From assembly GCA_044892525.1 (NCBI GenBank), contig CM097887.1:107362397-107426396 (forward strand): 64,000 nt of DNA. Direction: 5' to 3'. Shown here piece by piece: positions 5,956-36,426 of this stretch. Below the pieces are notes generated by a model. The model was given only the letters and a program-made list of their open reading frames with translations. It was not told the DNA's origin and made no database searches. The translations under genes were made by a program, and so were the position numbers. This DNA is from Schmidtea polychroa (taxonomy: Eukaryota). Numbering within the stretch: the first letter of the stretch is position 1; each line of letters starts with the position of its first letter.

Positions 5956-6050
5956 ATGACAGAAAACAGAAGACGCAACGACATTTCAATAAAGACAAAA
6001 TTGGAGATAATTGCTGAATGTGATAAAGTTCCAAAACAGACATTTTCTAT
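5956..6050 (+). pseudogene. N-terminal 31 codons of the Tigger transposase (HTH_psq-like), cut by the LTR insertion
   Basis: MTENRRRNDISIKTKLEIIAECDKVPKQTFS joins in frame to MIAEKFKIDRSTVSK at 36427 when the element and one CTAT copy are removed. Confidence 0.9.
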
Positions 6051-6584
6051 TGTTGGGGTTACACCTCGGCTGACTACTCTACTATGTTGACAGGTCTAAG
6101 GGTTGATTGTCCATCTCGAATAAAAGGTGCCACCGATTTGTCAACCTGGAGTGAAACCCCACATAACTTTCTTCCAACATAGTGCCCGTGAATCACTTCA
6201 CGTTGGTACTGCACTATGCAGGCGAGACGCCAGCAAGCAGGTGAGCTTCTGCCTTAAAACTACTCCTTGCTGAGGCCTCGACTTCCCATTCACGACTGCC
6301 GATAGAAGGGCTTACGTCCATTTCCTTACACAACCGCTTATCGGGATTCGCTGAATGCAAATTGGGAATTTCTCACTAGATCTTGCGGGTTCTCTACTCG
6401 ACCCACTTAATTAAAGTCTAATTATTCATGAACGAAGACGTGTAAGACAACAAGATTTATTAATTTCAAGGTTATGACACAAGGATTCAGCTGTACACTT
6501 TACTAACGTTTATCGAAAGAAGAGAAAACATCGTAATCAACATAGATCGGATCCTTGTTCCTCATCCTGACCGCCACTGGGGTT

Positions 6585-7337
6585 TTATTGTTTCTCCCAT
6601 TCAGCGTCGGCGAATAATTCGTCGAGGTTAAAAAACTCGGAAGCGTTCTCTTCCCACGTTACGCCAGCGGCTGATATGATTCGCGCTGAGGGTCCCGTTG
6701 TTAGGTCGATGGACACGTGAGAGTTGCCACCGTTGGTTGAGTCCTCTATTGATGGGATGTTTGGCTTGGTAGTGGCGCGTTCGCGCTGTCTCTTCTTGCG
6801 CTCCGCACGAGAGAGTTGTTTGCGCTTGGGTTTGCTTGAAGATGCCACTTGCAGAAGGGTGACTGAGACAGATGGACTAGCAGTGGGGGGCTTACTGGTA
6901 CCCGTGATGACAACATCTGGTCGCTTGGGGGACAATTCGTTTTCGACGCAGTCTCGGCACGGTCTCTTGAACGGTGGAGATGGATTCGAGGAAAGGTTGT
7001 GATGAGGCGGAAAGATGTCACCGGCCTCTCGGATGGGAATCTGCACTATTTTTCGGGTTGTGGCCGCCTGCACGTAAACCTTATGCAGTGCCTCGGATTG
7101 TTCTCTGATTAGACTTCTTTGGGCACGGCTCTCAGATATTAGCGCGTCCCGACAATGCTCGCTACGATCGAGCTTCTTTTGGATCTCCTTCATCCGAGCG
7201 GGACTAAACCATGTCCCTTCCAGCTCGTCGATTTTTCGTTTATATCGACCGATCTGGGCTTGAAGATCTTTAATCACTGCATTTTTATCTGAGCAGGAGA
7301 AGCAGGGACGTAGAGCTGATTTGTTGTTTGATAACAT
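6585..7337 (-). CDS. LTR-encoded 250-aa protein (two CxxC, coiled coil, basic NLS-like stretch, acidic/aromatic C-terminus); 3' LTR copy
   Basis: ATG-initiated ORF in element sense. Acceptor-like ttttcttctttAG lies 9 nt upstream of the ATG. AATAAA overlaps the stop (6584-6589) and a second occurs at 6456-6461. Confidence 0.7.
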   Translation of the reverse strand: MLSNNKSALRPCFSCSDKNAVIKDLQAQIGRYKRKIDELEGTWFSPARMKEIQKKLDRSEHCRDALISESRAQRSLIREQSEALHKVYVQAATTRKIVQIPIREAGDIFPPHHNLSSNPSPPFKRPCRDCVENELSPKRPDVVITGTSKPPTASPSVSVTLLQVASSSKPKRKQLSRAERKKRQRERATTKPNIPSIEDSTNGGNSHVSIDLTTGPSARIISAAGVTWEENASEFFNLDELFADAEWEKQ

Positions 7338-9742
7338 AATGGATGGCTAAAGAAGAAAACTATGGTGACTATATCTAAAAATTTCGGATCAGATATACGG
7401 TTTATTCGCTATTGGATACTTAGTGCTGGAAGAAAACAAGACGAGTCGATGAAACAGGATCCCTCCCTTCACCCTTGATTACTAATATTTTACGTATCCT
7501 TTACAAAAATTATTCCTCAACGCCCTGATTGCTTCCCTGACGAATGCAAATTATTTGTAAAAATTTTTATTTTCGTCTATCGCGTTCAAGTTGGATTTCT
7601 ATCTATCGCACATAAAGGCAATTTACGGATTTATTCCTGCCGGAGCGAATAACCCTATTTCATTACAAATACACTATACTACACTTCGTTTAAATTTCGC
7701 TGATTATTTGTTATTATTCTAATGCAAAATAAGGTTTTTGGACCAAATGCAACTAGTAAAAACTTGCACCCTGACCTCAAGTAGCGGAATAAGTAACAAC
7801 TCGTAATTTCGTATAAACTATACGTCACTATTTTATGATTACCCCTTATCCATACCATACGGTGATATCGTCGTAGAAATATAGCATCGTAAAAATATTG
7901 TAATTACATAATAATTTGTTAACGGATTTAGTTTTCTATTACAATACGTCATTTACAGGGAATATGAGAAATTTAACTACAATGTTACTAGCTATTTTAT
8001 AACCCAAAAATTCCTGTAGATACTTTAGTTAATTTAAATTTGGCTCGAAGGCTACTACTATTATTTGTAACATCTAATTAGAATTACGATAAACCTCTAC
8101 AACACTTAGGTAAAACTTCCTATGGTTTAGTTATAAAGTTTGGTTTGAATTTTCGATTATTAATTAAAATACCCTTTCAACAATTTCGATTTTTATTTAG
8201 CATATTTAATTTAAGCAAAATTATCTTTAATGAGTGCACTTTAGAGAGTCCCTTATCTTAGTAGTCGGTTACTGGTTATTTGGCTTATCTTTTTAGTGGT
8301 ACGAATGGCCTTTATCAGTAGTGAAATTTAAGAGTCAGTCATCTGGAAGTCACATCTCATGTCAGCATTATCTAATAGGACCACTGATTACTACTCACTC
8401 ACTAAGAATCCTAGAGAGGGTGACACATGGTGGCATTCCCTGCGGTGAGAGGCATTCGGAATGATTCTGCTGTTTCTCATGCATATTTCTGACCGGATGA
8501 CGCTACTCATAGTTATGTTAGCAGTATGTCTGTATGTATGGGTGCCTATTCGATGGAAATTTTATCTGTAACTATCAACCGTACTGAGCGAACTGCAAAT
8601 GTTACATCGCGTGTCGATTCCCATCTGAGCTTATGATGTTGGATTTATTTACTACGACTCGTAATTTCCTCAATATTGGATGCTTTTGAACGATGGAAGA
8701 TCTCTACGAACCAGCCAACTAGACTCTATGAAGCATATTTCAGTAGTGGATATTTCGACGCGACAGCATGAAAATTATTCAATGGGTATTACCAGATTTT
8801 GTTAATATATGTGATTGAATACAGTGTTATTGTGGTTTTATGTTTTACTTTTCCTTTATTGTAAATTCCTCATCATATGCTAAGATTTGGATGTCGCATC
8901 TGAAAGAGATGACCTAAATTAGATTTACTTTTTCAAAAATCTACCGAATGCAATTTCAACTTCTCGATATGTTAGAAAAACCAGCGATGGATGTTTAATG
9001 GTATTTTCCCCCACATGGTAAGTTCGGATTTATAGACAGAAGTGGCATGAATGTCTTATAAGACGACTCTGGACAATACAGAGTTAATAGGAGAACTCCC
9101 TCAGTCGCTGTGAAGCACATATCCTATTTTCGAAAATTTCATAAGGTTTCCTTTCGGTCTATATTTCGGTACTCTGACAGATTTTAAGTCCTTCAGCAAT
9201 TGGACCCGTGAAGAAGCCTTCACATTTCGGCCCAATCTAGCTGCGTGATTGAAATACTCCATGTCCACCGGCTGAGCTCCCGAAGGCACCTCGCACCATG
9301 ACATGGAGTATCTCAACGCCACGTTTCTCGTTAATATTAGAAATCATAAAACTATCACTTCAAAATAAATATCCATAAAAATTATGTAAGGGTTCACCTG
9401 TTACCAATAAATACTTTTAAACATTTAAATTATTTACTTTATCAAAATCGTTATTCAGGATCAAATGAAAAGAGAGTCCGGTTAAATTTAAAAGTTTAAT
9501 TGCTCATTAAATATACATATTTACTATTAACCTCGAAAAACAATATCATAAATAAAAATCCCTTACTATGGAATTAGGCTGAATCGGAAAATTAACGTTA
9601 GTCGTTCCAAATTAGTCTGATGATGGTTCGTCGAATGTCGATTGCTGTGACTGATTTCGAATTGCTGTGAAGTTTTTCGAATTAACTGTTGCTCTACTTG
9701 TATTGCTGATCCTGGAAATAAGTCTCCGTGAGTTGTAGATGT

Positions 9743-9819
9743 CTATGAAATGCTCGGGGTTAACAGTAAAAACAGTAAACATTTTTCTTACCTATGAAAT
9801 GCTCGGGGTTAACAGTAAA
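9743..9819. promoter_or_regulatory. 28-bp direct repeat in the U3-side of the LTR (9743-9770, 9792-9819; also 35957-35984, 36006-36033); candidate enhancer
   Basis: ctatgaaatgctcggggttaacagtaaa occurs twice, 49 bp apart. Function is inferred from position only. Confidence 0.45.
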
Positions 9820-10436
9820 TTTAATGTTTTTGGTAGTTGTATATATATCAAATTCTTATTTGTGCGGACCAATCAGAGTTGAGTACCGCTTATTTCTATT
9901 AATTTAATATAATTTTCTTGTTTTTAGGTTGTTTTTTCCTTATTTTCTTTATTTTTAATATGTTTTTCTATTTATTTCCTTAATTTCCTTATTATTTCTT
10001 GAATTCCTCTTTATTTATTTGTCAACTTGTTCTATTTTAATCTTTTCTTAATTTTATTTTTTGTTTTAATTCTTATGTCTTACTTATTATTTTCCTTATA
10101 TCTTATTCTATTTTATTTCTGATTTTATTTATTTTATTATTATTTTTCTTAATGTTCTACTTCCCTACTTTCCTATTTTTCAACGATTAAATTTTCGACT
10201 CAGCCCAACAAATCACTCGGGGACCCATCAAAATTGCGTCCCGCAATTGCATAATTAACTTAATTCATTCATTCAAAAAAAAAATATAACACGAACACGA
10301 AAATTATACAACAATGATAAAATTTTTATTGTAAGATCTAGGTCAAAGCAAGATCAAGCAAGTATCACTTAAGGTGATAGTTTGTACATACAATAAAAGT
10401 TTCCACATATAATAACACAAATGTTTGAGTTAGAGT

Positions 10437-11105
10437 TTATGAACTGTTAACCATTGATGCTTCTGCTGGCGGCTGTTGGTTGGTTTGGGTATTGATGTTG
10501 AGATAGGTCTGACTATTAGATTTCGGCTGGATTGGTTGATTACTCGGGGTTCGAGGTCGGAATGGGGTTGGGTTAAGATTTGTCAGGGGCACTTCTTGAG
10601 GATTTTGGTTCGAGGTTACTCTTATTGATGTCGAGATTCTACATCTATTTCGAACTTCGTAAATTTTCATGAATATTGGTAGACATAGGAGGAGGGTTTC
10701 TGCGATCACCACATATATGAGATAATGGGCGTTATTGATTTCGGGAGGTATTTTTGGCTTTTCTACCAGATTTCCAAAATTCTCTTGTTGCATTTGTTGT
10801 TCCAACTGGTCGAATTGTTGAATTTGTTCGAGGATTTGTTTGTTTATCATTTTACAAATGGGATTCTTTTTACACATTGTTTGGATGTTGTTGATGTGTG
10901 ATCGGGTTGATTGAATGGTTTGGATGATATGGGTTTTTACGGTCATCGGGTATGTGCATTGACTGGATTCTTGTTTAGGTTCTTGATTTTGATTTCGGTA
11001 ATCTCGTACGATTTTCGGTTGGGCGTCTATTTGTTTGCTCTCCTTCAGAATCATCAATACCATCATTGTTATCATCATCTCGCCTCGCATGATACTATTA
11101 TACAT
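10437..11105 (-). CDS. Accessory type I membrane protein (likely start Met6 at 11090)
   Basis: Met-rich signal-like N-terminus (MRGEMMITMMVLMILKESKQIDA-Q), Gln-rich helical ectodomain with two Cys, TM segment YLIYVVIAETLLLCLPIFM, Pro/Asn/Gln-rich tail. Confidence 0.75.
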   Translation of the reverse strand: MYNSIMRGEMMITMMVLMILKESKQIDAQPKIVRDYRNQNQEPKQESSQCTYPMTVKTHIIQTIQSTRSHINNIQTMCKKNPICKMINKQILEQIQQFDQLEQQMQQENFGNLVEKPKIPPEINNAHYLIYVVIAETLLLCLPIFMKIYEVRNRCRISTSIRVTSNQNPQEVPLTNLNPTPFRPRTPSNQPIQPKSNSQTYLNINTQTNQQPPAEASMVNSS

Positions 11106-11145
11106 TCATTATGTTTATTTACAATTGGTTTTAATGACCCTTAAT

Positions 11146-11898
11146 TTAATGGTTCTGATTTGGATTATTTTCGCCGATTCTCATCAAGGTGGACTCTGCT
11201 TTAATTACCCTGTGTCTTAACTCGGGCAGCATTTCCAATTGTCGGTCTTTTTCACGGGCTTCTCTCTTTAGATGTCTAATTTCTTTTTCCAAGCGTCTAA
11301 TTTCTTCCCTTTTCTTTTCAAGGTTTCTTTTTAGCTCGATTTGTAGGAGATCTTGTTCGTTTTCTTGCAGATAATTTTGTTGTTGATGTTTTCTTTCTAT
11401 TTCTCTATATTTGCGGACCCACTTCCTCATTTCTTTACTTTCCCGTTGGTTTTCTTCTAGTTGTCGTTTTAATTTATTTATAGCTGTTTGGCGCTCCTTC
11501 GCCTCAGTTTTCCAGTAGTCTTGGATTACCTCCTTTGCTTTGAAGCTTGCCCTCTCTTTCCATAGTTCTTCCGCTATCTTTTCCCAGTTTTTCCCTCGCT
11601 TCCTTTGTTCGTGTAGCCATTCATTTTCCTCTTCCGTTTCTCTTTTTATTTCCCCCAACGCTTCGCACTCTTTCTTTAACACCTTTATCATTTTCCGGTC
11701 CTCTAGGTATTTGTTTATTAATCTCCCGTTTTCGTATTTCTCTTCCCGTAACTCGGCCTTTAGCGTTTGTGTTTCTGTTGTTTCTGCCTCAATCTCTCCC
11801 TCTTCTACGTCGCTCATAATTTCTATCATTTCCTCGATTTTCATATCTATAATATGTACAGTTAATGGTGCGCTATAGTGCGACTTATACGTATACAT
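11146..11898 (-). CDS. Accessory coiled-coil protein (250 aa; likely start Met19 at 11844)
   Basis: Intact ORF, E/K/R-rich heptad-like composition, same orientation as the element. Confidence 0.75.
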   Translation of the reverse strand: MYTYKSHYSAPLTVHIIDMKIEEMIEIMSDVEEGEIEAETTETQTLKAELREEKYENGRLINKYLEDRKMIKVLKKECEALGEIKRETEEENEWLHEQRKRGKNWEKIAEELWKERASFKAKEVIQDYWKTEAKERQTAINKLKRQLEENQRESKEMRKWVRKYREIERKHQQQNYLQENEQDLLQIELKRNLEKKREEIRRLEKEIRHLKREAREKDRQLEMLPELRHRVIKAESTLMRIGENNPNQNH

Positions 11899-12015
11899 TG
11901 ATATAAAATTTAATAGTTTGGGTTACAGTCCCTTGAATACTTTTACAATACTTTAATTTTTTTTTTGTTTGGGATATACGTCCCGGTTTTTAGTTTTTCA
12001 TCTTTTCATCCACCC

Positions 12016-13125
12016 TTATACGAAGGTTTCCTCCTGGCCTACATAACCTTCATCACTATCGACCGCGGAATGTAACTGTATCGCAATAGGGTCGTATGGT
12101 AGGTAATATTGGGGAATTTGAGCTCTCAATTCATTAATTTCGTCTCTTAGAGCTCGAGTGATGTTCAATTCCTCGTCGAGCAGATAGGTGAGATACCTTG
12201 TCTCTTCGTCTTTCGCCTCTATCTGTTTGTCTAGGGCCTTGATTTTCTCGTCGCCCTTCCATTTTTCAATTTCTATTTCTAAGTTTTTAATATTTTCGGT
12301 GTACATTTTCCTTTCGTTTTCTAATTTTCTGTTTTTTCCCGCTAGGACCATGTTTCTTTGTTCCAGCGATCCTTGTAATCCATTAAGGTCTCTTTTCATC
12401 TCTTCTACCTGATTTACTAATTCCACAACCCGTCCCGCTTGTTGGGTTATCATCTCTTCCATTGCGGCATTCTCGTGCTCTCTTATGTCGCACTTCATTG
12501 CCAAATGTCGCTCAAACTCCATAGCCTTTGTTTGCCAGGTTTGGCTTCGGGCGGCGACCTTTCTCAACCTTTTCAATTCTTCCTTTATTATTAAATTCTC
12601 CTCCCATTTACCTTGTTCGCTTTCATATCCGAGTCTCATGGGCAATTCTTTCATCTCTTTTTTCATTTCTCTGTTTTGTCTTTTCCATTTTCTCGCTTCT
12701 GCCACTAAGTGCATCATTTTCCTGTCTTCTATTTGTTTTTCCGCTTCGCGCTTGGTGTTCTCATCGGTAAGTCTTTTTCTCGCTTCCTGCACTAGCTGCT
12801 TTAAGTAGTGGCTGTGTGCTTCTTGGCGGGTATTTTCTAGTGACGCCCATTTTGATGCTCTTTTGCATGCTTCTGCTTCCGCTCTTAAGTTGTGTATTAA
12901 CCATTGGTATTGACTATTCTCATCTTCTCTAGTTTCTTCGATGTGATTTCGGGTGAGATTAGTTAGTTGGAACATTACTTTGTTCCATTTTTTATTATGT
13001 TCTCGGGGAATTTGTGTCTTGTTGACATTGGTTGGGGCTATCGCAGTTTCGGTTATTTTCTCTTGTGTCATCTCTAAATCATAGACATCGATTAATCTTT
13101 TTATTATGAAAAGGAATTTATTCAT
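12016..13125 (-). CDS. Accessory coiled-coil protein (369 aa; likely start Met19 at 13071)
   Basis: Intact ORF with long E/K/R/Q-rich helical stretches. Confidence 0.78.
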   Translation of the reverse strand: MNKFLFIIKRLIDVYDLEMTQEKITETAIAPTNVNKTQIPREHNKKWNKVMFQLTNLTRNHIEETREDENSQYQWLIHNLRAEAEACKRASKWASLENTRQEAHSHYLKQLVQEARKRLTDENTKREAEKQIEDRKMMHLVAEARKWKRQNREMKKEMKELPMRLGYESEQGKWEENLIIKEELKRLRKVAARSQTWQTKAMEFERHLAMKCDIREHENAAMEEMITQQAGRVVELVNQVEEMKRDLNGLQGSLEQRNMVLAGKNRKLENERKMYTENIKNLEIEIEKWKGDEKIKALDKQIEAKDEETRYLTYLLDEELNITRALRDEINELRAQIPQYYLPYDPIAIQLHSAVDSDEGYVGQEETFV

Positions 13126-13263
13126 TATTTACTGTTTCTTGGGAAATTTTCGCATCATTTTTGGGTTTTCGTATTTAGGGTTTTCATACTATTATTATAT
13201 AATATTTTATTGGTTATATACACCGATATATACAGATTATTATATACAACATTATTCGATTGG

Positions 13264-14652
13264 TTATTCCGTTCTACCCTTCTCCTCTTTCCTCACGGTC
13301 ATCTTGATATATATGGTATCATTTCTCGCCATATCTTCTACTCTTTGTTGTGAGATGAACGTAGGTGCTCCTGTTGCTGATCCTTCTTCGTTGAGGGGCC
13401 TCTGGTAAGCTATTTGATTCCCCGTTGTTTTGAAGCTTTGCTCATGTATACTTTGGTTGTTCATCAGAGTAATATCGATTTTTGCCTGGAACGGCCATTC
13501 TAATATTTCGTCGTATTCTCCTTTACATAACAGAAAGAAAATCGAAAAGTGCGTGTTTAATCCGGTTCCGTCCCCGTTGGGATATATCTTCATTTTCATT
13601 TTGTACCCATTTTTCCAAGAGTGGAATGTAGGACTTGTTATTCTTGTCTCTTCTCCGGTTTTTGCTTTTCGTATTCTTTCTTTTACTCCCGTTATTTTCC
13701 ATATGTAGGGTGCTGTTGGGGTTATCTCATTTAGATTTATTTCCCGTATTTTCTGATGTAGCTCCTTGGCCTGATTATTACTGATTTCTGTTCGGTTTAT
13801 TTGCATCTTTATGTTTGCTCGGGCTTCTTCGAACGCTTTCCTTTCTTCTAGTAGTTCTTTGACTAACACTTTCAACGATGTTATCTCTATCTCCATTTGT
13901 TTTACTTTCTCTTCGCTTTCTTGTAACGCAGTCGACCACATTTCTGCGTGAGTTGAAGCATTTTCTACTAAATGATGTGGTAACTCACCTCGGTGTAGTA
14001 ATTTCTGACAACCCCATCTACCTAGTACACATGTCATTCTTTTCTTTTCGCATTCCCTTAGATGCTGTGCCACCTTCATTATTTCCCCTTGGTTACATCC
14101 GTTTGGGCATTCCCCACTGAACTCCGCACATACTCTCTCCTCTTGGACATTGTGATGTTTGAGGGTGAGATTTATCCACGTATCTATTTCTCCACAGTGT
14201 TCACATCTTTCTAATCTCTCTTCACACTGCTTTTGATGTTCTTTTTCTTCGCTTGCTCGAATGGTTTTATGGCACCTTTCACACTGGCCAATTCTGTACA
14301 TACATTCTCCCATATGTTGTACTACCTTCCATATTACTCCTTTCCATTCGCATGGGGCATTTTTGCATCCCAGGTTGGTGTTTAACATGTCTTTCACTGC
14401 GGCTTTATCCTCGTTAGTGTCTTCTAAACTCGATATTAGTGTCTCTTTACACACCGGGCACCTCTGTGGTCTATTTTTTATTGCTTCACTGATACATTCT
14501 TTACATACTCTGCATCCACATTGCGTTTGGTGAGGTTCCTTTAACAACCCTTCACATATTCCGCACATAACATGTTTGTGTATTCTGATCGTTGTAGATT
14601 TTCGGACTTGCTCGACAATCTCCCTGAACTCTTCTCTTTGTCGTTTATCCAT
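13264..14652 (-). CDS. Full-length intronless TRAF (RING, TRAF zinc fingers, coiled coil, MATH/TRAF-C)
   Basis: RING CGICEGLLKEPHQTQCGCRVCKEC...CPVC; repeated CxxGC/HxxxC fingers; MATH core GYKMKMKIYPNGDGTGLNTHFSIFFLLCKGEYDEILEWPF resembling TRAF2/3/5. Confidence 0.95.
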   Translation of the reverse strand: MDKRQREEFREIVEQVRKSTTIRIHKHVMCGICEGLLKEPHQTQCGCRVCKECISEAIKNRPQRCPVCKETLISSLEDTNEDKAAVKDMLNTNLGCKNAPCEWKGVIWKVVQHMGECMYRIGQCERCHKTIRASEEKEHQKQCEERLERCEHCGEIDTWINLTLKHHNVQEERVCAEFSGECPNGCNQGEIMKVAQHLRECEKKRMTCVLGRWGCQKLLHRGELPHHLVENASTHAEMWSTALQESEEKVKQMEIEITSLKVLVKELLEERKAFEEARANIKMQINRTEISNNQAKELHQKIREINLNEITPTAPYIWKITGVKERIRKAKTGEETRITSPTFHSWKNGYKMKMKIYPNGDGTGLNTHFSIFFLLCKGEYDEILEWPFQAKIDITLMNNQSIHEQSFKTTGNQIAYQRPLNEEGSATGAPTFISQQRVEDMARNDTIYIKMTVRKEEKGRTE

Positions 14653-14737
14653 TCTATAATTATATGTACAAATAGTTCTTATCGATACAGGTTCGATATT
14701 TTATTTACAATTATTTACATTTTAAGCTAGGTTTGGT

Positions 14738-15097
14738 TTAGGGTTCGGAAGAGTCGGCTTCGTGTCCGCTCTCCTCTCTATTCATTAGCCATTCCGACCA
14801 GTCTTCTATTTCTGTCTGTTCTGCTTCCTCCCTCATTCGGTCTATTTCAATTTCCTGTCGACGGCTATATTGGGTTATCCTCTCTATCTCTCTTTGCATT
14901 TGTTCGATTTTTAACCTCTGGTCTTCAATTATCTTCAAATAACTAAATCCTCTGTTCATACTCTCGATCAGGTTTCTGTGCATCGTCAGTCCTTGTTCTT
15001 GCAAATTGGACACTAATTGTGCTAATACGGCACATTGTTGCTTCCATAATTCTTCAGTTACTGTATTGTGGTTCATTTCGTTATTTCCTTGATCCAT
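14738..15097 (-). CDS. Accessory short coiled-coil protein (119 aa from ATG at 15097)
   Basis: The ORF track starts at a TTG (15121); the first ATG is MDQGNNEM. Q/E/R-rich helical sequence with acidic C-terminus. Confidence 0.7.
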   Translation of the reverse strand: MDQGNNEMNHNTVTEELWKQQCAVLAQLVSNLQEQGLTMHRNLIESMNRGFSYLKIIEDQRLKIEQMQREIERITQYSRRQEIEIDRMREEAEQTEIEDWSEWLMNREESGHEADSSEP

Positions 15098-15257
15098 TCC
15101 TAATTTATATACACTTTTCAACTCTTATGTAAATTTAATTTTATTTTATGATTCCCGTTATTGTATAATATTGATACCGCGCTTATATAAAGATATAGTA
15201 CTGTTATATACATAAGATATACTTACTTTTTACAATTATATACAGTCATATTCCTTT

Positions 15258-16260
15258 CTATATACGTGAGTTTGGAGGGCGCTGAGCGTTCCAGGCCTCC
15301 ACCCACTGTTCTTGTTTGATATCACTTGGTCGTTTCACTCGATGTTGGAAATTTCTGATTCGAGTCATCTCTAGTTCTCCGCGATGTCGTTTATCCTTAA
15401 TTATTTTTATTGTTCCCCCCGTTATGATTAGGAATGCCCCTGTTATTATTATCCCACTGATCCACATCATCTGCTTCACGCTTATACTCTCTGGTTTTTC
15501 CTTGTTGGTTAATGTTGATATCGCTTCTGTACTTCTCTCGTTTCCTCTTTTGCCATTTCCTTTCATCATTTCCCGTATTCTTGCTATTTCCTCGTTCATA
15601 CCCTCCTTTGCCATCTTTTGTATTTTTTCCATCTCTTCCTCCGAAACATAGTTGTCCTGAGCTTCCTCACCAGTTTTCTTGTGCTTTCCTCCTTCGTTCT
15701 TTTCGTCGTGGTTTTTTCTTTTCCTTCCTCTTTTCCCCGGGTATCGTCGGCATTCTCTTTTTGATTCATTCCTCCAGATACAAACCGTGTATTCTTTCGG
15801 CGGCTGCTGCTGCGTCACATATTGATGGCATCTCTCACCTGGTCCTAATCTTGAAATACAGACTTTGTGCTCTTTTCTAGGTTGGATCTGCGTTATTACT
15901 ACTTCACCACCTTTTCCTAGGTGTACCTCTTTTCCTTTGACGTTCGTTATTCTCTTCCCGTCTCGATTTCGGTATGCTTCTTGTATTCTTACTTCTGTTA
16001 TTGGTTCTGTGTCCTCATTTATCAGTACTAATTTCTGATACGCTCTAGACATGCATCTTCCTAGTATGCACTTTTCCTTTAAGTCCCATTCTTCCTTTAA
16101 ATCCCACTGCTGCTCTTGTGCTTGCTTTCTCTTTTCTTGTTTTAGTTCGTCCTCTTTGCTATCTTGATTCTCCGCTTCTTTGGTTTCTTTTATCGTTCTC
16201 GTCCCTCCCTGAGCTGTTACTAACTCTATCATGGTAAGCATAATTATCATTAATATCATA
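15258..16260 (-). other. Polyprotein C-terminal type I membrane protein module
   Basis: Signal-like MILMIIMLTMIELVTA-Q (about 16205-16260), Cys-containing beta-rich ectodomain, TM MMWISGIIITGAFLIITGGTIKII (about 15403-15475), basic tail. Confidence 0.65.
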
Positions 16261-25200: not shown

Positions 25201-28200
25201 AGTTTCGTTGGTTGTTGATAACTCGTTGATGGCTGGTTATTAGTCCACATTTCGGCTCCTGTCGGCCATTTCACTAATAGCGGTGATCTTTCTCCTGGTT
25301 CATCGTCACTATCTTCCAGGATTATCTCTTCAACTTCTTCAGTTTCATTAGATTTACTTGGTGCTTTGTTCGGACTTGGAGTACTCAAACTGCCTTTTGT
25401 TGGTTTAATAATTTTACTTTTCCTTTTTAACGGTTTCCCCAACGTTTCTGCCATCGTTAATACATTTGTCTCTTCCAATCTCATGGGTGTTATCCCGACG
25501 TCTGCATTATCGTCTAGTGATTTTCCGAACAGTTGCAGATGGAATGGAGTTTCATATGCTAATTTCTTTTTTAATTCTCTAATTTTTGTTGTTGGATGCA
25601 CCTCTAGTTCCTCGATGCTCTTGTCCGGATACTTGATTCGGATGTGATACCTCTCCTGGGTGTCTTGTGCCCATTCCTGATTTCTCCATTTTCGAATAAT
25701 TTGTTCTAGCTGTTCTGGATACCATTCATTATATTGCCGGTATTCCTCTATTGCCTTTGCCATTCCTCTCAGATTGTGGATATTCTCTGATGTTTTTAAG
25801 ATGATATTAGCCAACGCTACTACCTGGCGTTTTTGATTTTTCGCTCCCATTGCTAAAATATCGCCTAATTGTTTATATCTTTCTTTCTCTTCTCGTTCTC
25901 TTGCTTCCGCCGCTTCCTCGCCGTCCATATCAGCATATTCCCGTTCCTTTTTCCTCATTGCATGAATATGTCTCGCTTCATTTTCGCTTTCTGATGTGAC
26001 ATCCGTCTCGCTTTCGTCATCTGATGTCTGTCCCCTTGCTTCCTCTTCATATTCTGGGGGTTCCTCTTCTTCTTCCTCCGATTCACTTTCTGTCTCACCG
26101 ATGTCTGTTTCCACGAAGGTTCCTTTCCGGATTTCCCATTCCTTACTTTCTGCATTCCACACTCTTTCCCATGGGGTTCGTCTGCAGGATCTGGTGCTTA
26201 ATTTCGTGATTTTTCCTTGTAGTTCTTTTTCTTTTAACCATTGTTGGTGGATTTCAATTAGTTCTATAGATTTTCGATATAACGTTTTCATCCGGTCTCG
26301 TATTTCTTTTTGATAGGTTACATCTCTTGTTCGAAATTCATCCATTGGTACTATCCTGATTATCTGGTGATTGTCCCACATACCCATTTCGCTTAACGAG
26401 GTGTCGTCCTCCGCTCGTAATATTATCTTATCGTACATCATGACTACATCATCCACCATACCATCACTACTTTCGCTACGTACCTTTTCCGTTATCTCTT
26501 GGTTTATTTTTGATACCAAGTCATCTACTGTACTCTGATTGCTCATTTTTATTCGTCGTTTTTCTTCGTTCGGTAACCATATGGTTATTTCCAACCTCTG
26601 TGGCTGGGTTTCTTTTAACCTTCCATATTTGTGGATCAAATTTATGGTTCTCCAATCACTCATTCGGAGCATTTCTGTATCTCGCAACCGGCTCATTAGT
26701 TCGTACATGGCTGGGGCTCGTCTGGTGATGAGTAAATCCCAGTTGTCTTCTACTTGTTCTTGAATTTGTTTGATCAGCTTATCCAGGTTTCGTCTCAGAG
26801 TACATTGTTTTATTTGTTCTAATTTCAATTTGATATTAAAATCATATTCTGCCTTGGCATCTTTAGCCCAATCGTAAAAATTGGCTGGTTGTTTTTCTTT
26901 ATGCAACTTCAGTATTTGCGTTTCTCCTGGCCATATTAGTGCATCTACTAAGTGCATATCTGGTTTGATCTGTTCTCCTTGGTATTGATACAGATATTCT
27001 TTCTTTCTCGAACTTCCCAAATGTTCTCGTATCCAATCGAAAAGTTCGTCGGTGACTGTATTTTTTATCCACATTCTTTCAAGTCCTCTACTCGTTCCAA
27101 TTTTTATTACATACCGCGTGGTATCGGCCTGCTTCATTTTTTCCATATAATTTTTTATAATTGATTTTTCCTCGTTTGGTATTAGATCTTTCTCGTTTCT
27201 TTCCAATTTCATCACTTTTTGCACGAATCGCCTGAATGGTATTACGTCAATGAACTCTTGGTTCCTCACTACTACTGGGAGTATTTCCGCTACTTGTTTT
27301 ATCGCTTCCTCCTTCCCTTTTCTCAACTTCATTTCGATATCCTCGTCTTCACTTTCGCTGGTTATCTCGCTTTCGCCTTCTTCCTCTTTGATTTCCCCTT
27401 TTGGAGGTTCGCTTATTTCATTCAGCTGTAGTATTTCTCCACCCAAACTACTTACATAGTCTTCTTCCTCGTCTGATGATGCTACATCTTTTGTCCTTTT
27501 CATCATATTGATTTGCAAGTTTCTCATCCTTGGTACTCTCTTTAGTTTCTTTCTTTCGAATCTCGTTGTTTCTTCTGATTCTAATTCCTGTAGCATTTGG
27601 TGGTTTAGTTGACTGGTTTGTTCCTTGCTCTTGTTATTTTCATCTTCTGTCTCGGCTTTCGCTTTATTATGTTCTTTTTCGATTTTATCTTTTATCTTTT
27701 TCCAGAATATTTTCTGAATTCTCTGGTTTCCTTTTAAAATCGTGGTTGAATTCTCTGTTTTCATTTCCGTTGTTATTTCTTTTACCTTTTCTGGTTCAGT
27801 CATGGGTACTACCCTTGGGCTTTTCCCGTAATTGTAGCAATACTGGCTCTTCATGTCTTTTACTAACTTCATCATATTTATTCGCAATGGTTGTTCTTGT
27901 CGTTGTTGGTTGCGTTCTTGTTTTATCCTCTCTTCCTCGGCCTGTAGCCTTTGCCATTCTTGTACATGTTGATGCACTTCATAATTGTTGAGATTTTCGG
28001 TACTCCTCATCATACGTATATTCTGGGTTTGTTGTGGTGCTGATTCTTGTCTTGGTCTCATCATTTGTTGCATCATCTGTTTCATCTGCGAAATTTCCTG
28101 CATAACGTTCATTTGTTTTCCTTCGTTAGGGTTACTTTGTCGTTGCGGATTCGCTATATAATTATTGTTTCGCTGTGGTGGTCGTTGTTGTTGGCCCCTT

Positions 28201-29111: not shown

Positions 29112-30420
29112 GATTGGTGTTCTAGGTTCGTCTGTTTCTTTTAAATTGTCTAACGATGTGACTAAACTTTGGGCTGATAATTCCTCGGTTGACGTTGCTA
29201 AACTATTAGTGATATCGGACAGACTTTCTCTACTTCGAGATCGACTAGGGGTATATCCGAGATTTTCTTGGTCAAATATGGGTACTTGATTGGTTCTTCT
29301 GGATCCTTGTGATATTCCTCTTTGATGTTTAATGGATCGTCCTCTTTTGAGTTGTTGTAATTCGTCTCCTGAAAATAATACGTCTCCTGGCTTACTAGAA
29401 GATCTAAGATTGGGTTTATCCGTGATTCCTTTCTTACGCTTCTTGGTAATTAGCGGCTATTGAATCGGACGCGTTCGGTTCTGATTGTGTTTCCTTCGAT
29501 AAATATTCTGTATGAATCTGCTACTGAGATCCTGAGGAGATTTACTAATTCCTGGCAGATGGCTGCTAATACTTCTTCCGTTCTGGAGTCTTCCGGTTGC
29601 TGTGTCTCTCGGTGCGGGTTCTGAATGGATTTATCCTTGGTTGATTGTCGATTTTCTTCGAATTCCTTTTGTGCAGGTTCTGGATTGTCTTGGTTGGCTG
29701 GATTGGCTTGATATCTAAAATGAAAAAATGATCTCGTGTTGCATTTGCTTACACGACTTCATCATTCTTTCTACAACATTCAAAAACAGACACCTTTTAG
29801 GTTTCTGTTTGTGCTTCCCCTATCTTTTGTGAAATCCTGTCTGCGGTTTATAATATCCCATCAGCCCGTATTTTCCGTCGATTTTAAATTATCTATATGG
29901 GGTAGTAACAATTATCTATAAAGTCGTAATAATTATCTATTCGTTATCAATTATAGTAAAAATAGGTCGTTGTCGGTCTCTGCTTATTACCCCCCTTTCA
30001 TTTTCCTAATCCTTTTGCGCTGTTGTCGCTATTTTACTTTTCATATTCACTATTATTACGCTCGGTTCTACTCTGGAACCAATAAAATGCATTTTCCCGG
30101 TTTAACAAAAAAAATATTCCGTAGAGTTTCTCTACTTCACTGGGATCCCTTTAATTAGTTAGTTACTTTCCTCTTTACTCATTATCATCATTTCATCTAT
30201 TCTTTATTTTCTATTGTCTCTTTAATTCGTTTCCTTCTTCCCTTTCCTTTTTCATTATAATCTTATTTTCTTTTCCACGAGCTCGTTTATTTCCTCTCTA
30301 AACTCGAATTTTCAAAATTACATTCAATTTGTTCTAGCTAGCTTTAATATTCCATATCACTAGTAATTTAAATATTATCTCATTGTAGCTTAACTGCTAT
30401 CTCTCGCTTTTCTAGGCCTT

Positions 30421-30864
30421 TACGACTGGCTGGCACTATTCAACAGCTCAATCTTCTTCCTTCTGATCGGTTGGACTATTCAACAACTCGATCTTACGAC
30501 TGGCTGGCACTATTCAACAGCTCAATCTTCCTCCTTCCTGATCGGTTGGACTTTTCACAACTCGACCTTACGACTGGCTGGCACTATTCAACAGCTCAAT
30601 CTTCCTCCTTCCTGATCGGTTGGACTTTTCACAACCCGACCTTACGACTGGCTGGCACTATTCAACAGCTCAATCTTCCTCCTTCTTGATCGGTTGGACT
30701 TTTCACAACTCGACCTTACGACTGGCTGGCACTATTCAACAGCTCAATCTTCCTCCTTCCTGATCGGTTGGACTTTTCACAACTCGACCTTACGACTGGC
30801 TGGCACTATTCAACAGCTCAGTCTTCCTCCTTGACCGGCTGGATTATTCGACAGCTCGGCTTCA
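30421..30864. repeat. 74-bp tandem repeat, five full units plus one degenerate, in the leader between the RING ORF and gag
   Basis: tacgactggctggcactattcaacagctc starts at 30421, 30495, 30569, 30643, 30717 and 30791. Confidence 0.95.
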
Positions 30865-31436
30865 ATATTCCTCGCTCTGCATGCTTCTATTTCTCTTTTC
30901 TTCTTTTACTCTAGTTTACCATTTTCTCTGTCTACTTTTAATTTGTCGACTTAATCTTACCGCTTGGGAGTGTTTCCCCTTTCCCCCCTTGCTCAAAACG
31001 CACGACGATCGCGATGATCCATTTCTACATTGGCATGGTGATCAGTCATGTCGCAAAAACTTCTCATCATATGCGATGGTACCCCGCCCTACGCTTCTTA
31101 CTTGGGTTGATCAGTTATCCCCTCCCAACGGGTTCTTGCAATAAGACGTACCGCCCGAAGGTGGCTCGGTTTGTACCCCTGCAGTCTATATTGGGACTAA
31201 TTCCACGTTATTCAACCCTCTCTTCATTTGATTCCGAAAAAAAAAATAAAACAAAACAAACACGCAAATATTCATTCGTCATGCAAATTTTATTAGTCCT
31301 ATTCATCAAAACTTTTTAAAGACGAATTTATTTATCATAAACATAAAGATTGAATCATTAACAGTACGTGTTACTTCAACAATTTCATGCATTCTTGTTC
31401 AAACATCGTATACTTGCTGTTACATCGCCGGCCGTT

Positions 31437-31922
31437 TCATTCGCCATAATAGACCATATGGGTCTCTTTTATTTCATATTTGCACATCGTGCATCTTTTT
31501 AGGTCTTTTACACACTCTTCACAGTGACTGAGGTGTCCACACGGCAAGAATAATACGCGAATAGGACGGAGTTTGCAGGCTATACAAGTTCGTAATTGGT
31601 TAACTTTTTCCTGTATTTTTTGTTCGATTGCATCTGGTATTGTATTTAGTGAGTCTTTTAGACGCTGGTAATCTAGATTTAATGTTGGGTGGTTCAATCT
31701 CTCTTGATACCACTGATATACGGTTTCGGGGTTTATTTTTCCATCTGGGCGACTTAGGCCTGTGGCTAATATCATATGATTAGGTACGACTGGTGTTTGT
31801 CCGATTGCTTGCAGTAATATCGCGTTGATTTTTTCTCTTTTATGCGTCAGTGTTGTTAGGGAGTCGTTTTCTATATCGATAAACTTGAGCAGTTGTTGCA
31901 TTTGGTTCGCGAATTCTGTCAT
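31437..31922 (-). CDS. 161-aa protein with C-terminal IAP-type C3HC4 RING finger, no BIR
   Basis: CIACKLRPIRVLFLPCGHLSHCEECVKDLKRCTMCKYEIKETHMVY (RING at 31482-31586) matches the IAP/MYLIP RING pattern; strong acceptor-like ttacttttccaacAG lies 2 nt before the ATG. Confidence 0.88.
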   Translation of the reverse strand: MTEFANQMQQLLKFIDIENDSLTTLTHKREKINAILLQAIGQTPVVPNHMILATGLSRPDGKINPETVYQWYQERLNHPTLNLDYQRLKDSLNTIPDAIEQKIQEKVNQLRTCIACKLRPIRVLFLPCGHLSHCEECVKDLKRCTMCKYEIKETHMVYYGE

Positions 31923-32239
31923 AGCTGTTGGAAAAGTAATGTTTTAATAATATGTAGTAAATTAATAGTTAATTCGTTAATTGGTTTCTTTAACCATTGC
32001 TAATTATTTAATTTGACTACTTTATCTCCTTTATTTATATATATCCTTAATTTTCCTATTATCTACATTTTGATTTTCTCTACTTAGTTCCTAATATAAT
32101 TTAATAATCAATAGTCAATTTGCATTCGTCAAGCAATGGTCGGTTGAAAACAGAAAATCGATGTGATAAATCCCTTTAATTTTGTATGAAAATCCCGGTG
32201 AATTTCGCATTCGTTAATAGAAATTTCGATCGATTGTAG

Positions 32240-32257
32240 ATCCCGGCTGAGCCCCCA
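32240..32257 (-). other. Primer-binding site, tRNA-Pro-like
   Basis: Minus strand TGGGGGCTCAGCCGGGAT, 7 nt inside the 5' LTR end; 16/18 identical to the MLV tRNA-Pro PBS TGGGGGCTCGTCCGGGAT. Confidence 0.85.
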
Positions 32258-32264
32258 AAAATCA

Positions 32265-35200
32265 TGTTGGGGTTACACCTCGGCTGACTACTCTACTATG
32301 TTGACAGGTCTAAGGGTTGATTGTCCATCTCGAATAAAAGGTGCCACCGATTTGTCAACCTGGAGTGAAACCCCACATAACTTTCTTCCAACATAGTGCC
32401 CGTGAATCACTTCACGTTGGTACTGCACTATGCAGGCGAGACGCCAGCAAGCAGGTGAGCTTCTGCCTTAAAACTACTCCTTGCTGAGGCCTCGACTTCC
32501 CATTCACGACTGCCGATAGAAGGGCTTACGTCCATTTCCTTACACAACCGCTTATCGGGATTCGCTGAATGCAAATTGGGAATTTCTCACTAGATCTTGC
32601 GGGTTCTCTACTCGACCCACTTAATTAAAGTCTAATTATTCATGAACGAAGACGTGTAAGACAACAAGATTTATTAATTTCAAGGTTATGACACAAGGAT
32701 TCAGCTGTACACTTTACTAACGTTTATCGAAAGAAGAGAAAACATCGTAATCAACATAGATCGGATCCTTGTTCCTCATCCTGACCGCCACTGGGGTTTT
32801 ATTGTTTCTCCCATTCAGCGTCGGCGAATAATTCGTCGAGGTTAAAAAACTCGGAAGCGTTCTCTTCCCACGTTACGCCAGCGGCTGATATGATTCGCGC
32901 TGAGGGTCCCGTTGTTAGGTCGATGGACACGTGAGAGTTGCCACCGTTGGTTGAGTCCTCTATTGATGGGATGTTTGGCTTGGTAGTGGCGCGTTCGCGC
33001 TGTCTCTTCTTGCGCTCCGCACGAGAGAGTTGTTTGCGCTTGGGTTTGCTTGAAGATGCCACTTGCAGAAGGGTGACTGAGACAGATGGACTAGCAGTGG
33101 GGGGCTTACTGGTACCCGTGATGACAACATCTGGTCGCTTGGGGGACAATTCGTTTTCGACGCAGTCTCGGCACGGTCTCTTGAACGGTGGAGATGGATT
33201 CGAGGAAAGGTTGTGATGAGGCGGAAAGATGTCACCGGCCTCTCGGATGGGAATCTGCACTATTTTTCGGGTTGTGGCCGCCTGCACGTAAACCTTATGC
33301 AGTGCCTCGGATTGTTCTCTGATTAGACTTCTTTGGGCACGGCTCTCAGATATTAGCGCGTCCCGACAATGCTCGCTACGATCGAGCTTCTTTTGGATCT
33401 CCTTCATCCGAGCGGGACTAAACCATGTCCCTTCCAGCTCGTCGATTTTTCGTTTATATCGACCGATCTGGGCTTGAAGATCTTTAATCACTGCATTTTT
33501 ATCTGAGCAGGAGAAGCAGGGACGTAGAGCTGATTTGTTGTTTGATAACATAATGGATGGCTAAAGAAGAAAACTATGGTGACTATATCTAAAAATTTCG
33601 GATCAGATATACGGTTTATTCGCTATTGGATACTTAGTGCTGGAAGAAAACAAGACGAGTCGATGAAACAGGATCCCTCCCTTCACCCTTGATTACTAAT
33701 ATTTTACGTATCCTTTACAAAAATTATTCCTCAACGCCCTGATTGCTTCCCTGACGAATGCAAATTATTTGTAAAAATTTTTATTTTCGTCTATCGCGTT
33801 CAAGTTGGATTTCTATCTATCGCACATAAAGGCAATTTACGGATTTATTCCTGCCGGAGCGAATAACCCTATTTCATTACAAATACACTATACTACACTT
33901 CGTTTAAATTTCGCTGATTATTTGTTATTATTCTAATGCAAAATAAGGTTTTTGGACCAAATGCAACTAGTAAAAACTTGCACCCTGACCTCAAGTAGCG
34001 GAATAAGTAACAACTCGTAATTTCGTATAAACTATACGTCACTATTTTATGATTACCCCTTATCCATACCATACGGTGATATCGTCGTAGAAATATAGCA
34101 TCGTAAAAATATTGTAATTACATAATAATTTGTTAACGGATTTAGTTTTCTATTACAATACGTCATTTACAGGGAATATGAGAAATTTAACTACAATGTT
34201 ACTAGCTATTTTATAACCCAAAAATTCCTGTAGATACTTTAGTTAATTTAAATTTGGCTCGAAGGCTACTACTATTATTTGTAACATCTAATTAGAATTA
34301 CGATAAACCTCTACAACACTTAGGTAAAACTTCCTATGGTTTAGTTATAAAGTTTGGTTTGAATTTTCGATTATTAATTAAAATACCCTTTCAACAATTT
34401 CGATTTTTATTTAGCATATTTAATTTAAGCAAAATTATCTTTAATGAGTGCACTTTAGAGAGTCCCTTATCTTAGTAGTCGGTTACTGGTTATTTGGCTT
34501 ATCTTTTTAGTGGTACGAATGGCCTTTATCAGTAGTGAAATTTAAGAGTCAGTCATCTGGAAGTCACATCTCATGTCAGCATTATCTAATAGGACCACTG
34601 ATTACTACTCACTCACTAAGAATCCTAGAGAGGGTGACACATGGTGGCATTCCCTGCGGTGAGAGGCATTCGGAATGATTCTGCTGTTTCTCATGCATAT
34701 TTCTGACCGGATGACGCTACTCATAGTTATGTTAGCAGTATGTCTGTATGTATGGGTGCCTATTCGATGGAAATTTTATCTGTAACTATCAACCGTACTG
34801 AGCGAACTGCAAATGTTACATCGCGTGTCGATTCCCATCTGAGCTTATGATGTTGGATTTATTTACTACGACTCGTAATTTCCTCAATATTGGATGCTTT
34901 TGAACGATGGAAGATCTCTACGAACCAGCCAACTAGACTCTATGAAGCATATTTCAGTAGTGGATATTTCGACGCGACAGCATGAAAATTATTCAATGGG
35001 TATTACCAGATTTTGTTAATATATGTGATTGAATACAGTGTTATTGTGGTTTTATGTTTTACTTTTCCTTTATTGTAAATTCCTCATCATATGCTAAGAT
35101 TTGGATGTCGCATCTGAAAGAGATGACCTAAATTAGATTTACTTTTTCAAAAATCTACCGAATGCAATTTCAACTTCTCGATATGTTAGAAAAACCAGCG

Positions 35201-36424
35201 ATGGATGTTTAATGGTATTTTCCCCCACATGGTAAGTTCGGATTTATAGACAGAAGGGGCATGAATGTCTTATAAGACGACTCTGGACAATACAGAGTTA
35301 ATAGGAGAACTCCCTCAGTCGCTGTGAAGCACATATCCTATTTTCGAAAATTTCATAAGGTTTCCTTTCGGTCTATATTTCGGTACTCTGACAGATTTTA
35401 AGTCCTTCAGCAATTGGACCCGTGAAGAAGCCTTCACATTTCGGCCCAATCTAGCTGCGTGATTGAAATACTCCATGTCCACCGGCTGAGCTCCCGAAGG
35501 CACCTCGCACCATGACATGGAGTATCTCAACGCCACGTTTCTCGTTAATATTAGAAATCATAAAACTATCACTTCAAAATAAATATCCATAAAAATTATG
35601 TAAGGGTTCACCTGTTACCAATAAATACTTTTAAACATTTAAATTATTTACTTTATCAAAATCGTTATTCAGGATCAAATGAAAAGAGAGTCCGGTTAAA
35701 TTTAAAAGTTTAATTGCTCATTAAATATACATATTTACTATTAACCTCGAAAAACAATATCATAAATAAAAATCCCTTACTATGGAATTAGGCTGAATCG
35801 GAAAATTAACGTTAGTCGTTCCAAATTAGTCTGATGATGGTTCGTCGAATGTCGATTGCTGTGACTGATTTCGAATTGCTGTGAAGTTTTTCGAATTAAC
35901 TGTTGCTCTACTTGTATTGCTGATCCTGGAAATAAGTCTCCGTGAGTTGTAGATGTCTATGAAATGCTCGGGGTTAACAGTAAAAACAGTAAACATTTTT
36001 CTTACCTATGAAATGCTCGGGGTTAACAGTAAATTTAATGTTTTTGGTAGTTGTATATATATCAAATTCTTATTTGTGCGGACCAATCAGAGTTGAGTAC
36101 CGCTTATTTCTATTAATTTAATATAATTTTCTTGTTTTTAGGTTGTTTTTTCCTTATTTTCTTTATTTTTAATATGTTTTTCTATTTATTTCCTTAATTT
36201 CCTTATTATTTCTTGAATTCCTCTTTATTTATTTGTCAACTTGTTCTATTTTAATCTTTTCTTAATTTTATTTTTTGTTTTAATTCTTATGTCTTACTTA
36301 TTATTTTCCTTATATCTTATTCTATTTTATTTCTGATTTTATTTATTTTATTATTATTTTTCTTAATGTTCTACTTCCCTACTTTCCTATTTTTCAACGA
36401 TTAAATTTTCGACTCAGCCCAACA
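32265..36424 (-). repeat. 5' LTR (4,160 bp)
   Basis: Direct repeat of 6051-10210, adjacent to the PBS. Confidence 0.97.
32799..33551 (-). CDS. LTR-encoded 250-aa protein; 5' LTR copy
   Basis: Translation identical to 6585-7337. Confidence 0.7.
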   Translation of the reverse strand: MLSNNKSALRPCFSCSDKNAVIKDLQAQIGRYKRKIDELEGTWFSPARMKEIQKKLDRSEHCRDALISESRAQRSLIREQSEALHKVYVQAATTRKIVQIPIREAGDIFPPHHNLSSNPSPPFKRPCRDCVENELSPKRPDVVITGTSKPPTASPSVSVTLLQVASSSKPKRKQLSRAERKKRQRERATTKPNIPSIEDSTNGGNSHVSIDLTTGPSARIISAAGVTWEENASEFFNLDELFADAEWEKQ

Positions 36425-36426
36425 CT

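Follow-up and report, generated by a model that had tools for sequence, protein, structure and literature searches.

How can an envelope gene lie in frame between gag and pol, and what sort of element carries it alongside several genes resembling components of host signalling? The question is raised by an insertion at positions 6051-36424 of a 64-kb stretch of genomic DNA, referred to here in its entirety as the window. A preliminary description had presented the insertion as an intact retrovirus-like element with an envelope (Env) and host-signalling cargo, and had placed its novelty in gene content and order. Our analysis indicates that it is very probably a giant Ty3/gypsy (Metaviridae) element of Burro type, endogenous retrovirus-like and of GAG-ENV-POL order, in an AT-rich, planarian-like genome. 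This kind of element has already been published and no new class of element is established here; the layout of the cargo is what is specific to this copy.

The provirus is of full length, its structure is intact and its integration very recent; it is flanked by long terminal repeats (LTRs), and its long open reading frames (ORFs) all run in one direction. Its boundaries and non-coding features are these:

6051..36424, minus strand: whole element, 30,374 bp, comprising 5′ LTR, leader with a RING ORF, giant polyprotein ORF, five 3′ accessory ORFs and 3′ LTR
32265..36424, minus strand: 5′ LTR, 4,160 bp, TG..CA ends
6051..10210, minus strand: 3′ LTR, 4,160 bp
6047..6050: left copy of the target-site duplication CTAT, 4 bp
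36425..36428: right copy of the target-site duplication CTAT, 4 bp
32239..32257, minus strand: primer-binding site, 19 nt, starting TGG, of tRNA 3′-end type, 7 nt inside from the 5′ LTR
30420..30832: tandem repeat of a 74-bp unit (5.6 copies, 97% matches), situated in the leader after the RING ORF and ahead of gag

In an ungapped comparison the LTRs show one mismatch and no indels over 4,160 bp, with identity ending at both outer edges, and the TG..CA termini lie within a 7-nt terminal inverted repeat. LTRs, termini, primer-binding site and 4-bp duplication are together the hallmarks of tRNA-primed reverse transcription and of insertion by a DDE integrase. The preliminary description had noticed the single mismatch, the duplication and the primer-binding site, and had judged the insertion very young; all of this is borne out, the LTRs differing by one base and the duplication being intact. 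All long ORFs lie on the minus strand, hence the 5′ LTR is the copy at 32265-36424, and the structure described earlier stands once its reading is corrected to that strand. The upstream part of this LTR is AT-rich with short tandem repeats and the downstream part is higher in G+C. The internal region measures 22,054 bp, of which the leader between the RING ORF and the start of gag takes up 2.3 kb. Scans of the window returned no tRNA gene and no Rfam match, and a promoter and terminator scan of the LTR, made with bacterial models unsuited to a eukaryote, gave a signal no higher than that of shuffled sequence. The master copy would have been functional when the present copy arose.

The boundaries are backed independently by what the element interrupted:

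5667..6050 and 36425..37981 (span 5667..37981), plus strand: pogo/Tigger-type DNA transposon, the insertion target, with 26-nt inverted ends that are 85% complementary

A 4-bp duplication is weak evidence by itself. The right flank, however, contains pieces of a pogo/Tigger-type transposase (HTH_Tnp_Tc5 and DDE_1), and an ORF piece on the left extends up to the duplication; with transposase pieces on both sides, the giant element must be nested inside the gene of another transposon, whose inverted ends lie at 5667-5692 and 37956-37981 (26 nt each). The transposase gene has two breaks, namely this insertion and one in-frame stop. The flanks have a GC content of 26-28%, which like the DDE_1 pogo/Tigger transposon is compatible with Schmidtea mediterranea, without proving it. 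A tandem duplication at about 2982-5660 (unit 1,261 bp, about 2.1 copies, 97-100% identical) stops just short of the left end of the pogo-type transposon.

Most of the internal region is taken up by a single polyprotein ORF, the 13.85-kb frame without a stop that the preliminary description had reported. Its parts, numbered in amino acids (aa), are as follows:

15258..29111, minus strand: polyprotein ORF, 13,854 nt, 4,617 codons, without stop or frameshift
28122..29111, minus strand: Gag module, aa 1-330, with Retrotrans_gag at aa 52-145 and three CCHC knuckles at aa 252-302
25650..28121, minus strand: charged, almost cysteine-free region, aa 331-1154, with no family match and not common to relatives
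25428..25649, minus strand: weak ubiquitin-like signal, aa 1155-1228 (Pfam ubiquitin, E 0.078)
24312..25427, minus strand: predicted helical region, aa 1229-1600, at the position where Burro1 reportedly has a BCL2-like motif
22392..24311, minus strand: Env module, aa 1601-2240, between gag and pol in frame (Pfam Monjiviricetes_fusion, PF24664, E 2e-70)
21648..21923, minus strand: aspartic protease (PR), aa 2397-2488, DTG present
20508..20984, minus strand: reverse transcriptase (RT), aa 2710-2868, YIDD present
19932..20321, minus strand: RNase H (RH), aa 2931-3060
19092..19610, minus strand: integrase (IN), aa 3168-3340, H2C2 zinc domain (HHCC present) and core
16938..18188, minus strand: ankyrin-repeat region, aa 3642-4058, two repeat clusters, in frame with integrase
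15261..16937, minus strand: C-terminal part, 559 aa, with no family or PDB match and two moderately hydrophobic segments

Pfam matches thus fall in gypsy order within one ORF (Retrotrans_gag, zf-CCHC, Monjiviricetes_fusion, RVP, RVT_1, RT_RNaseH, Integrase_H2C2, rve, Ank), and a weak SH3-like C-terminal domain follows the integrase core. Assignment to Ty3/gypsy (Metaviridae) rests on LTRs with TG..CA ends and a 4-bp duplication, the order PR-RT-RNase H-IN accompanied by a Retrotrans_gag/CCHC Gag, and the primer-binding site. From Gag to Env, about 1,270 residues are without family assignment save the weak ubiquitin-like signal; PDB matches to this are ubiquitin variants at E 0.3, and a poor model has a beta-grasp-like start. 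A single-sequence model of aa 1140-1600, which bears on a possible BCL2-like fold, had a mean predicted confidence (pLDDT) of 40 and was unusable; a metagenome scan using aa 1100-1600 returned no matches. The C-terminal 558 aa likewise had no match among solved structures in a sequence search.

The Env module has the layout of a membrane glycoprotein. It opens with a Met-rich, signal-peptide-like stretch (aa 1601-1616) directly preceding its first conserved cysteine, continues as a cysteine-rich ectodomain and ends with a membrane anchor (aa 2178-2196), the sole strong one in Env, and a short tail. Among 1.84 billion representative proteins, 1,066 matched Env; the closest of them (33-46% identity) sit inside other giant polyproteins, and many free-standing glycoproteins of about 650 aa match at 22-27% identity. 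All 14 conserved cysteine columns are kept in Env, as are 34 of 41 highly conserved columns. Of 66 free-standing glycoproteins, 92% have the hydrophobic signal-like stretch before the first conserved cysteine, as do all seven embedded Env modules.

A sequence search of Env against solved structures returned no match, and its placement came from a fold search. A structure model built with 79 sequences (pLDDT 84.6) had herpesvirus glycoprotein B (gB) as its best solved counterpart, at E ~1e-14 and probability 1.0, and among viral proteins its best counterparts were chuvirus and chu-like glycoproteins, at E values down to 3e-39. Judged by its modelled fold, Env is a class III (gB-like) fusogen of the Jingchuvirales/chuvirus type. 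Arkhipova and Yushenova had tied Burro Env to gypsy Env, and thereby to the glycoproteins used for fusion by baculoviruses, retroviruses and paramyxoviruses (PMC6431247); for this copy we set that kinship aside, as fold and nearest relatives are of gB/chuvirus type instead. An integrated chuvirus, that is a non-retroviral endogenous viral element, was also considered and rejected: Pfam gives no match to a nucleoprotein or polymerase, and the glycoprotein stands alone, within a gypsy polyprotein.

This layout suggests an answer to our opening question. The internal signal peptide would direct the nascent polyprotein to the endoplasmic reticulum (ER), placing the Env ectodomain in the lumen, with Gag (upstream) and Pol (after the anchor) remaining cytosolic; signal peptidase and the protease of the element itself would separate the pieces. 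We infer that this topology, with its internal signal peptide and anchor, is how env can lie in frame between gag and pol.

Relatives of the same construction, with Env-PR-RT-RH-IN in one giant ORF, occur in ENA and JGI assemblies at 42-49% Pol identity and reach 4,844 aa; in a metagenome scan with Pol, only relatives of at most 48% identity were recovered.

Polyproteins P0002-P0010 and P0173/P0176: relatives from a single ENA assembly
Polyprotein P0179: relative from a JGI metagenome, Pol 48.6% and Env 40% identity
Loci L001 and L002: relatives in ENA ERZ25039515
Locus L003: relative in JGI 3300033082

Bacterial-type ABC/MacB genes adjoin the element in L002, suggesting a chimeric contig. The relatives have Gag, Env and Pol in common with the giant element, but not aa 330-1530, aa 3530-4617 or any accessory ORF, and some have extras of their own, such as further copies of the protease, ankyrin repeats or a C2H2 finger. 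As the extras differ among relatives, giant Env-Pol polyproteins with variable cargo appear to be a trait of the lineage. Env relatives that are 31-41% identical all retain the signal peptide, the anchor and the 14 conserved cysteines, which argues for long-term purifying selection on the fusogen. Exact-sequence look-ups gave no match for the polyprotein, the TRAF-like ORF, the LTR ORF or ten proteins of the window.

The preliminary description had counted at least seven accessory ORFs in addition to an envelope, and seven are found beside Env. Six lie in the internal region and the seventh is present in each LTR:

31437..31922, minus strand: upstream RING ORF, 161 aa, IAP-type RING (zf-C3HC4_3) at its C-terminus
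14738..15121, minus strand: accessory ORF, 127 aa, acidic, no match
13264..14652, minus strand: TRAF-like ORF, 462 aa, with RING, TRAF zinc fingers, coiled coil and MATH/TRAF-C
12016..13125, minus strand: accessory ORF, 369 aa, coiled-coil hints only
11146..11898, minus strand: accessory ORF, 250 aa, coiled-coil hints only
10437..11105, minus strand: accessory ORF, 222 aa, with a hydrophobic, Met-rich N-terminus and a single membrane span (aa 128-146)
32799..33551, minus strand: LTR ORF, 5′ LTR copy, 250 aa
6585..7337, minus strand: LTR ORF, 3′ LTR copy, 250 aa

Host-signalling cargo, as first claimed, is upheld by matches to solved structures. The best for the TRAF-like ORF are the TRAF-C domains of TRAF1/2/3/5 (E ~5e-28) and the RING-zinc finger region of TRAF6 (E 2e-14), and its predicted domain content is that of a complete TRAF; a search for homologues returned one match only, at 35% identity. 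The RING ORF is most similar to the RINGs of cIAP1/2 and XIAP, and no BIR domain was found in its 161 aa. By inference from its hydrophobic segments, the product of the 222-aa ORF would be a small type I membrane protein. For ORFs and regions without assignment, Pfam at loose thresholds and NCBIfam gave coiled-coil or low-complexity noise only, and comparison of the accessory ORFs with the proteins and loci of the relatives, with the polyprotein and with the flanks revealed no similarity and no internal duplication.

The five ORFs of the 3′ block are arranged head to tail and go far beyond chance expectation: sense ORFs of at least 100 aa span 84.5% of its DNA, compared with a mean of 0.2% in 300 shuffles. 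Codon usage in frame matches that of the polyprotein in six of the seven accessory ORFs, those of the 3′ block included (r 0.61-0.88). The LTR ORF has a GC content of 51% and a codon-usage correlation with the polyprotein of only 0.35; in 300 shuffles of the LTR no ORF of 250 aa arose, the longest being 207 aa. Its N-terminal part is coiled-coil-like, its C-terminal end acidic, and it contains a basic run resembling a nuclear localization signal; a search for its homologues gave no matches. The TRAF, RING, ubiquitin-like and ankyrin parts would act on host ubiquitin-dependent signalling of TNF/NF-kB type and on cell-death signalling, to the benefit of the element.

Signals for expressing these ORFs can be proposed from motifs in the DNA. 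The 8-mer ATTGTAAA occurs six times in the sense strand of the 22-kb internal region, and four of these occurrences fall in the 742 nt of non-coding DNA in the 3′ block (3.4% of the internal sequence), 20-66 nt past the stop codons of four consecutive ORFs:

15236, 14711, 11949 and 11125, minus strand: starts of the ATTGTAAA motif in the 3′ block

An 8-mer common to at least four of the five spacers appeared in 14 of 2,000 shuffles, and ATTGTAAA may be a gene-junction or RNA-processing signal. TATA-like TGTATATA(A) motifs are clustered in two spacers of the same block. The sole strict acceptor-like splice sites in the element are in the LTRs (within 33560-34616 and 7346-8402), 9 and 88 nt upstream of the start of the LTR ORF, with GTRAGT donor-like sites about 1 kb further upstream, and the LTR ORF may be reached via a spliced RNA. 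The 3′ ORFs could be expressed from processed or separate transcripts, given that their spacers share a motif; the spacer motifs and the splice-like sites of the LTR are hints of such transcripts, no more.

How much of this has been seen before? Burro/GYPSM1 of S. mediterranea was described as a gypsy-like element exceeding 30 kb, up to ~25 kb of it internal, with tandem repeats and accessory ORFs (PMC6431247). ORF1 of Burro1, of 4,873 aa, comprises a Gag with three knuckles, MATH_TRAF_C, Ubi/SUMO-like and BCL2-like motifs, an env in frame between gag and pol, then PR, a dUTPase-like domain, RT, RH, IN, BIR and ankyrin, and a RING motif is also present in Burro (PMC6431247). The present element resembles this, by description rather than by sequence identity, in its total of more than 30 kb, its giant ORF1 that opens with a Gag of three CCHC knuckles, the in-frame position of env, the MATH/TRAF, RING and ankyrin cargo, the tandem repeats and the accessory ORFs. 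It differs from Burro1 in having an ORF1 of 4,617 aa and an IAP-type RING ORF in the leader upstream of gag. As the preliminary description had suspected, the element is probably a member or relative of Burro, going by the published description (PMC6431247). It may be one of Burro-2 to -4. Such elements are, to our knowledge, the largest LTR retroelements known, and occupy a large part of planarian genomes. By comparison, foamy-like endogenous retroviruses of fish reach up to 17 kb (PMC6431247).

A Burro-like element of Dugesia (Girardia) tigrina also has Gag, Env and Pol in a giant ORF1 and TRAF/MATH in an accessory ORF; there ORF1, at 5,140 aa, contains a midasin-like region and two CCHC knuckles, and TRAF is encoded upstream (PMC6431247), whereas the element described here has three knuckles, no midasin match, TRAF downstream and a RING ORF upstream. 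Ty3/gypsy 'errantiviruses' with GAG-ENV-POL order and an Env of herpes simplex virus/gB type have been reported from Platyhelminthes, Nematoda and Bryozoa (PMC13524379). They share with our element the gene order, the class III gB-like Env and intact LTR-flanked copies, but are three-gene elements, and the main text of that report speaks neither of very large elements nor of one fused ORF, of cargo of TRAF, RING or ankyrin type, or of Burro. Arthropod retroelements have captured chuvirus-like glycoproteins (PMC7642597), including captures of Chuviridae/Jingchuvirales glycoproteins by BEL/Pao elements of mosquitoes and gypsy elements of arthropods (PMC7642597, PMC10084718, PMC13524379). Env belongs to the same family as chuvirus glycoproteins (PF24664) and has its best structural matches among chu-like viruses, yet it is only 22-27% identical to the free-standing ones and sits within a gypsy polyprotein, in a genome that is not arthropod-like. 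With Drosophila gypsy (an errantivirus) and complex retroviruses it has in common an LTR element with an envelope, and its extra ORFs near the 3′ end and in the LTR recall complex retroviruses. The Env of Drosophila gypsy is F-type and encoded by a separate 3′ ORF from a spliced RNA, while here it is gB-type and in frame; the Pfam profile, compared with complex retroviruses, is gypsy-type and not orthoretroviral. The claim of novelty in gene content and order therefore holds in part. An env between gag and pol and TRAF/RING cargo were already described (PMC6431247), so that most of what would deprive the element of novelty is in print, and the kind of element is known (PMC6431247, PMC13524379); the layout of the cargo is particular to this copy.

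Several observations sit uneasily with the identification as a Burro-type, retrovirus-like provirus. Large protein collections contained no relative above 50% identity. TRAF is a complete and separate ORF downstream of ORF1, as opposed to a domain inside ORF1 in Burro1, the ubiquitin-like motif has no more than a weak counterpart, and the BIR, BCL2-like and dUTPase motifs of Burro are not detected by Pfam, which is less sensitive than the profile-profile (HHpred) searches used for the published motif calls (PMC6431247). A polypurine tract, expected of Ty3/gypsy, is not seen abutting the 3′ LTR, where purine runs in the last 60 nt reach at most ~4-5 nt; this is the second correction to the structure described earlier. 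Counted from the 5′ LTR, 50 ATGs and a 161-codon ORF precede the gag start. The Env ectodomain has one N-glycosylation sequon, a strict pattern scan found no splice-acceptor-like site ahead of either env or the 3′ ORFs, a result with which a spliced env RNA is still compatible, and the copy is so young that its lack of stops says little about selection. The last three points, together with the position of Env inside a polyprotein, also favour a more modest explanation, in which the element is an intracellular retrotransposon only, spreading purely vertically in the genome, and Env and the signalling cargo are passengers without a present role. No feature of the DNA shows cell-to-cell spread, and Burro has been described as an abundant transposon under the control of PIWI-interacting RNA, BURRO1 being abundant, active and expressed in differentiated tissues, and restrained by a PIWI protein (PMC8532177). 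What speaks for a working fusogen is the purifying selection indicated by its relatives, which have kept signal peptide, anchor and all 14 cysteines at 31-41% identity, and the persistence of the GAG-ENV-POL order in several lineages. We regard the passenger explanation as possible but not the likelier outcome.

Two other explanations were weighed. Genomes of planarian type are AT-rich and repeat-rich, giant elements are a known assembly problem, there are N runs elsewhere in the window and immediately to the left is a perfect tandem duplication of 1,261 bp, all of which might point to an assembly artefact (a chimera, or a collapsed or duplicated repeat) instead of one real insertion. Against this, 6051-36424 contains no N runs, pieces of one pogo-type transposase border the exact 4-bp duplication left and right, the internal region is uniform in composition and codon usage, the 13.85-kb ORF is unbroken, and the one-base difference between the LTRs shows that they are not a copy-paste of one read; we consider an artefact very unlikely. 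Scarcely more credible, and if anything less so, is a domesticated cluster of host genes (TRAF, RING, ankyrin) merely lying among retroelement remains. The strong expansion of MATH/TRAF in the S. mediterranea transcriptome (PMC6109357) is in its favour, but all ORFs are on one strand between near-identical LTRs and have one codon usage, the ankyrin repeats are fused in frame to integrase, and near-identical LTRs with an intact duplication mark a recent insertion rather than an old domesticated locus.

The remainder of the window holds a second, ordinary LTR element. This compact Ty3/gypsy element (54517-59083, minus strand, ~4.6 kb, with 118-nt direct repeats, 99%) has a 382-aa gag-like ORF and a 1,026-aa PR-RT-RH-IN ORF; its Pol, at only 31% identity to that of the giant element, places it in an unrelated lineage. 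It is adjoined by a 63-bp tandem repeat array at 53699-54013, with copies 69-79% alike. A 406-aa ORF (50845-52065, plus strand) lies in a locally GC-richer stretch and has a weak coiled-coil-type Pfam match, MAP65_ASE1 (E 0.0015).

Beyond the identification as a Burro-type provirus, a bolder reading may be entertained, although we think it improbable. The element would then represent an undescribed Burro sub-lineage and a complex flatworm retrovirus, having an RNA genome of more than 22 kb, a chuvirus-type Env sent to the ER by an internal signal peptide, and a 3′ multi-gene cassette with junction signals (ATTGTAAA, TATA-like), whose TRAF, along with the IAP-type RING encoded upstream, would rewire host TNF/NF-kB-type and cell-death signalling. 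An RNA genome of that size would be far beyond any retrovirus known to us.

At its more conservative level, the finding has uses that do not depend on this reading. For annotation of the Burro family, a copy without breaks and with exact ends makes a good reference. The conserved internal signal peptide and anchor provide a concrete and checkable topology model for Env, which bears on how the fusogen of a negative-strand RNA virus can work inside a Gag-Pol polyprotein. A strong expansion of both MATH/TRAF and DDE_1 domains has been reported for the S. mediterranea transcriptome (PMC6109357), and part of it may be borne by Burro-type elements (TRAF) and pogo-type transposons (DDE_1). The element carries a full predicted TRAF together with an IAP-type RING, and tallies of the gene families for immune signalling in these animals may therefore include copies borne by elements; and if the element is indeed a complex retrovirus, part of the 'TRAF expansion' of the planarian transcriptome would be carried by elements such as this.

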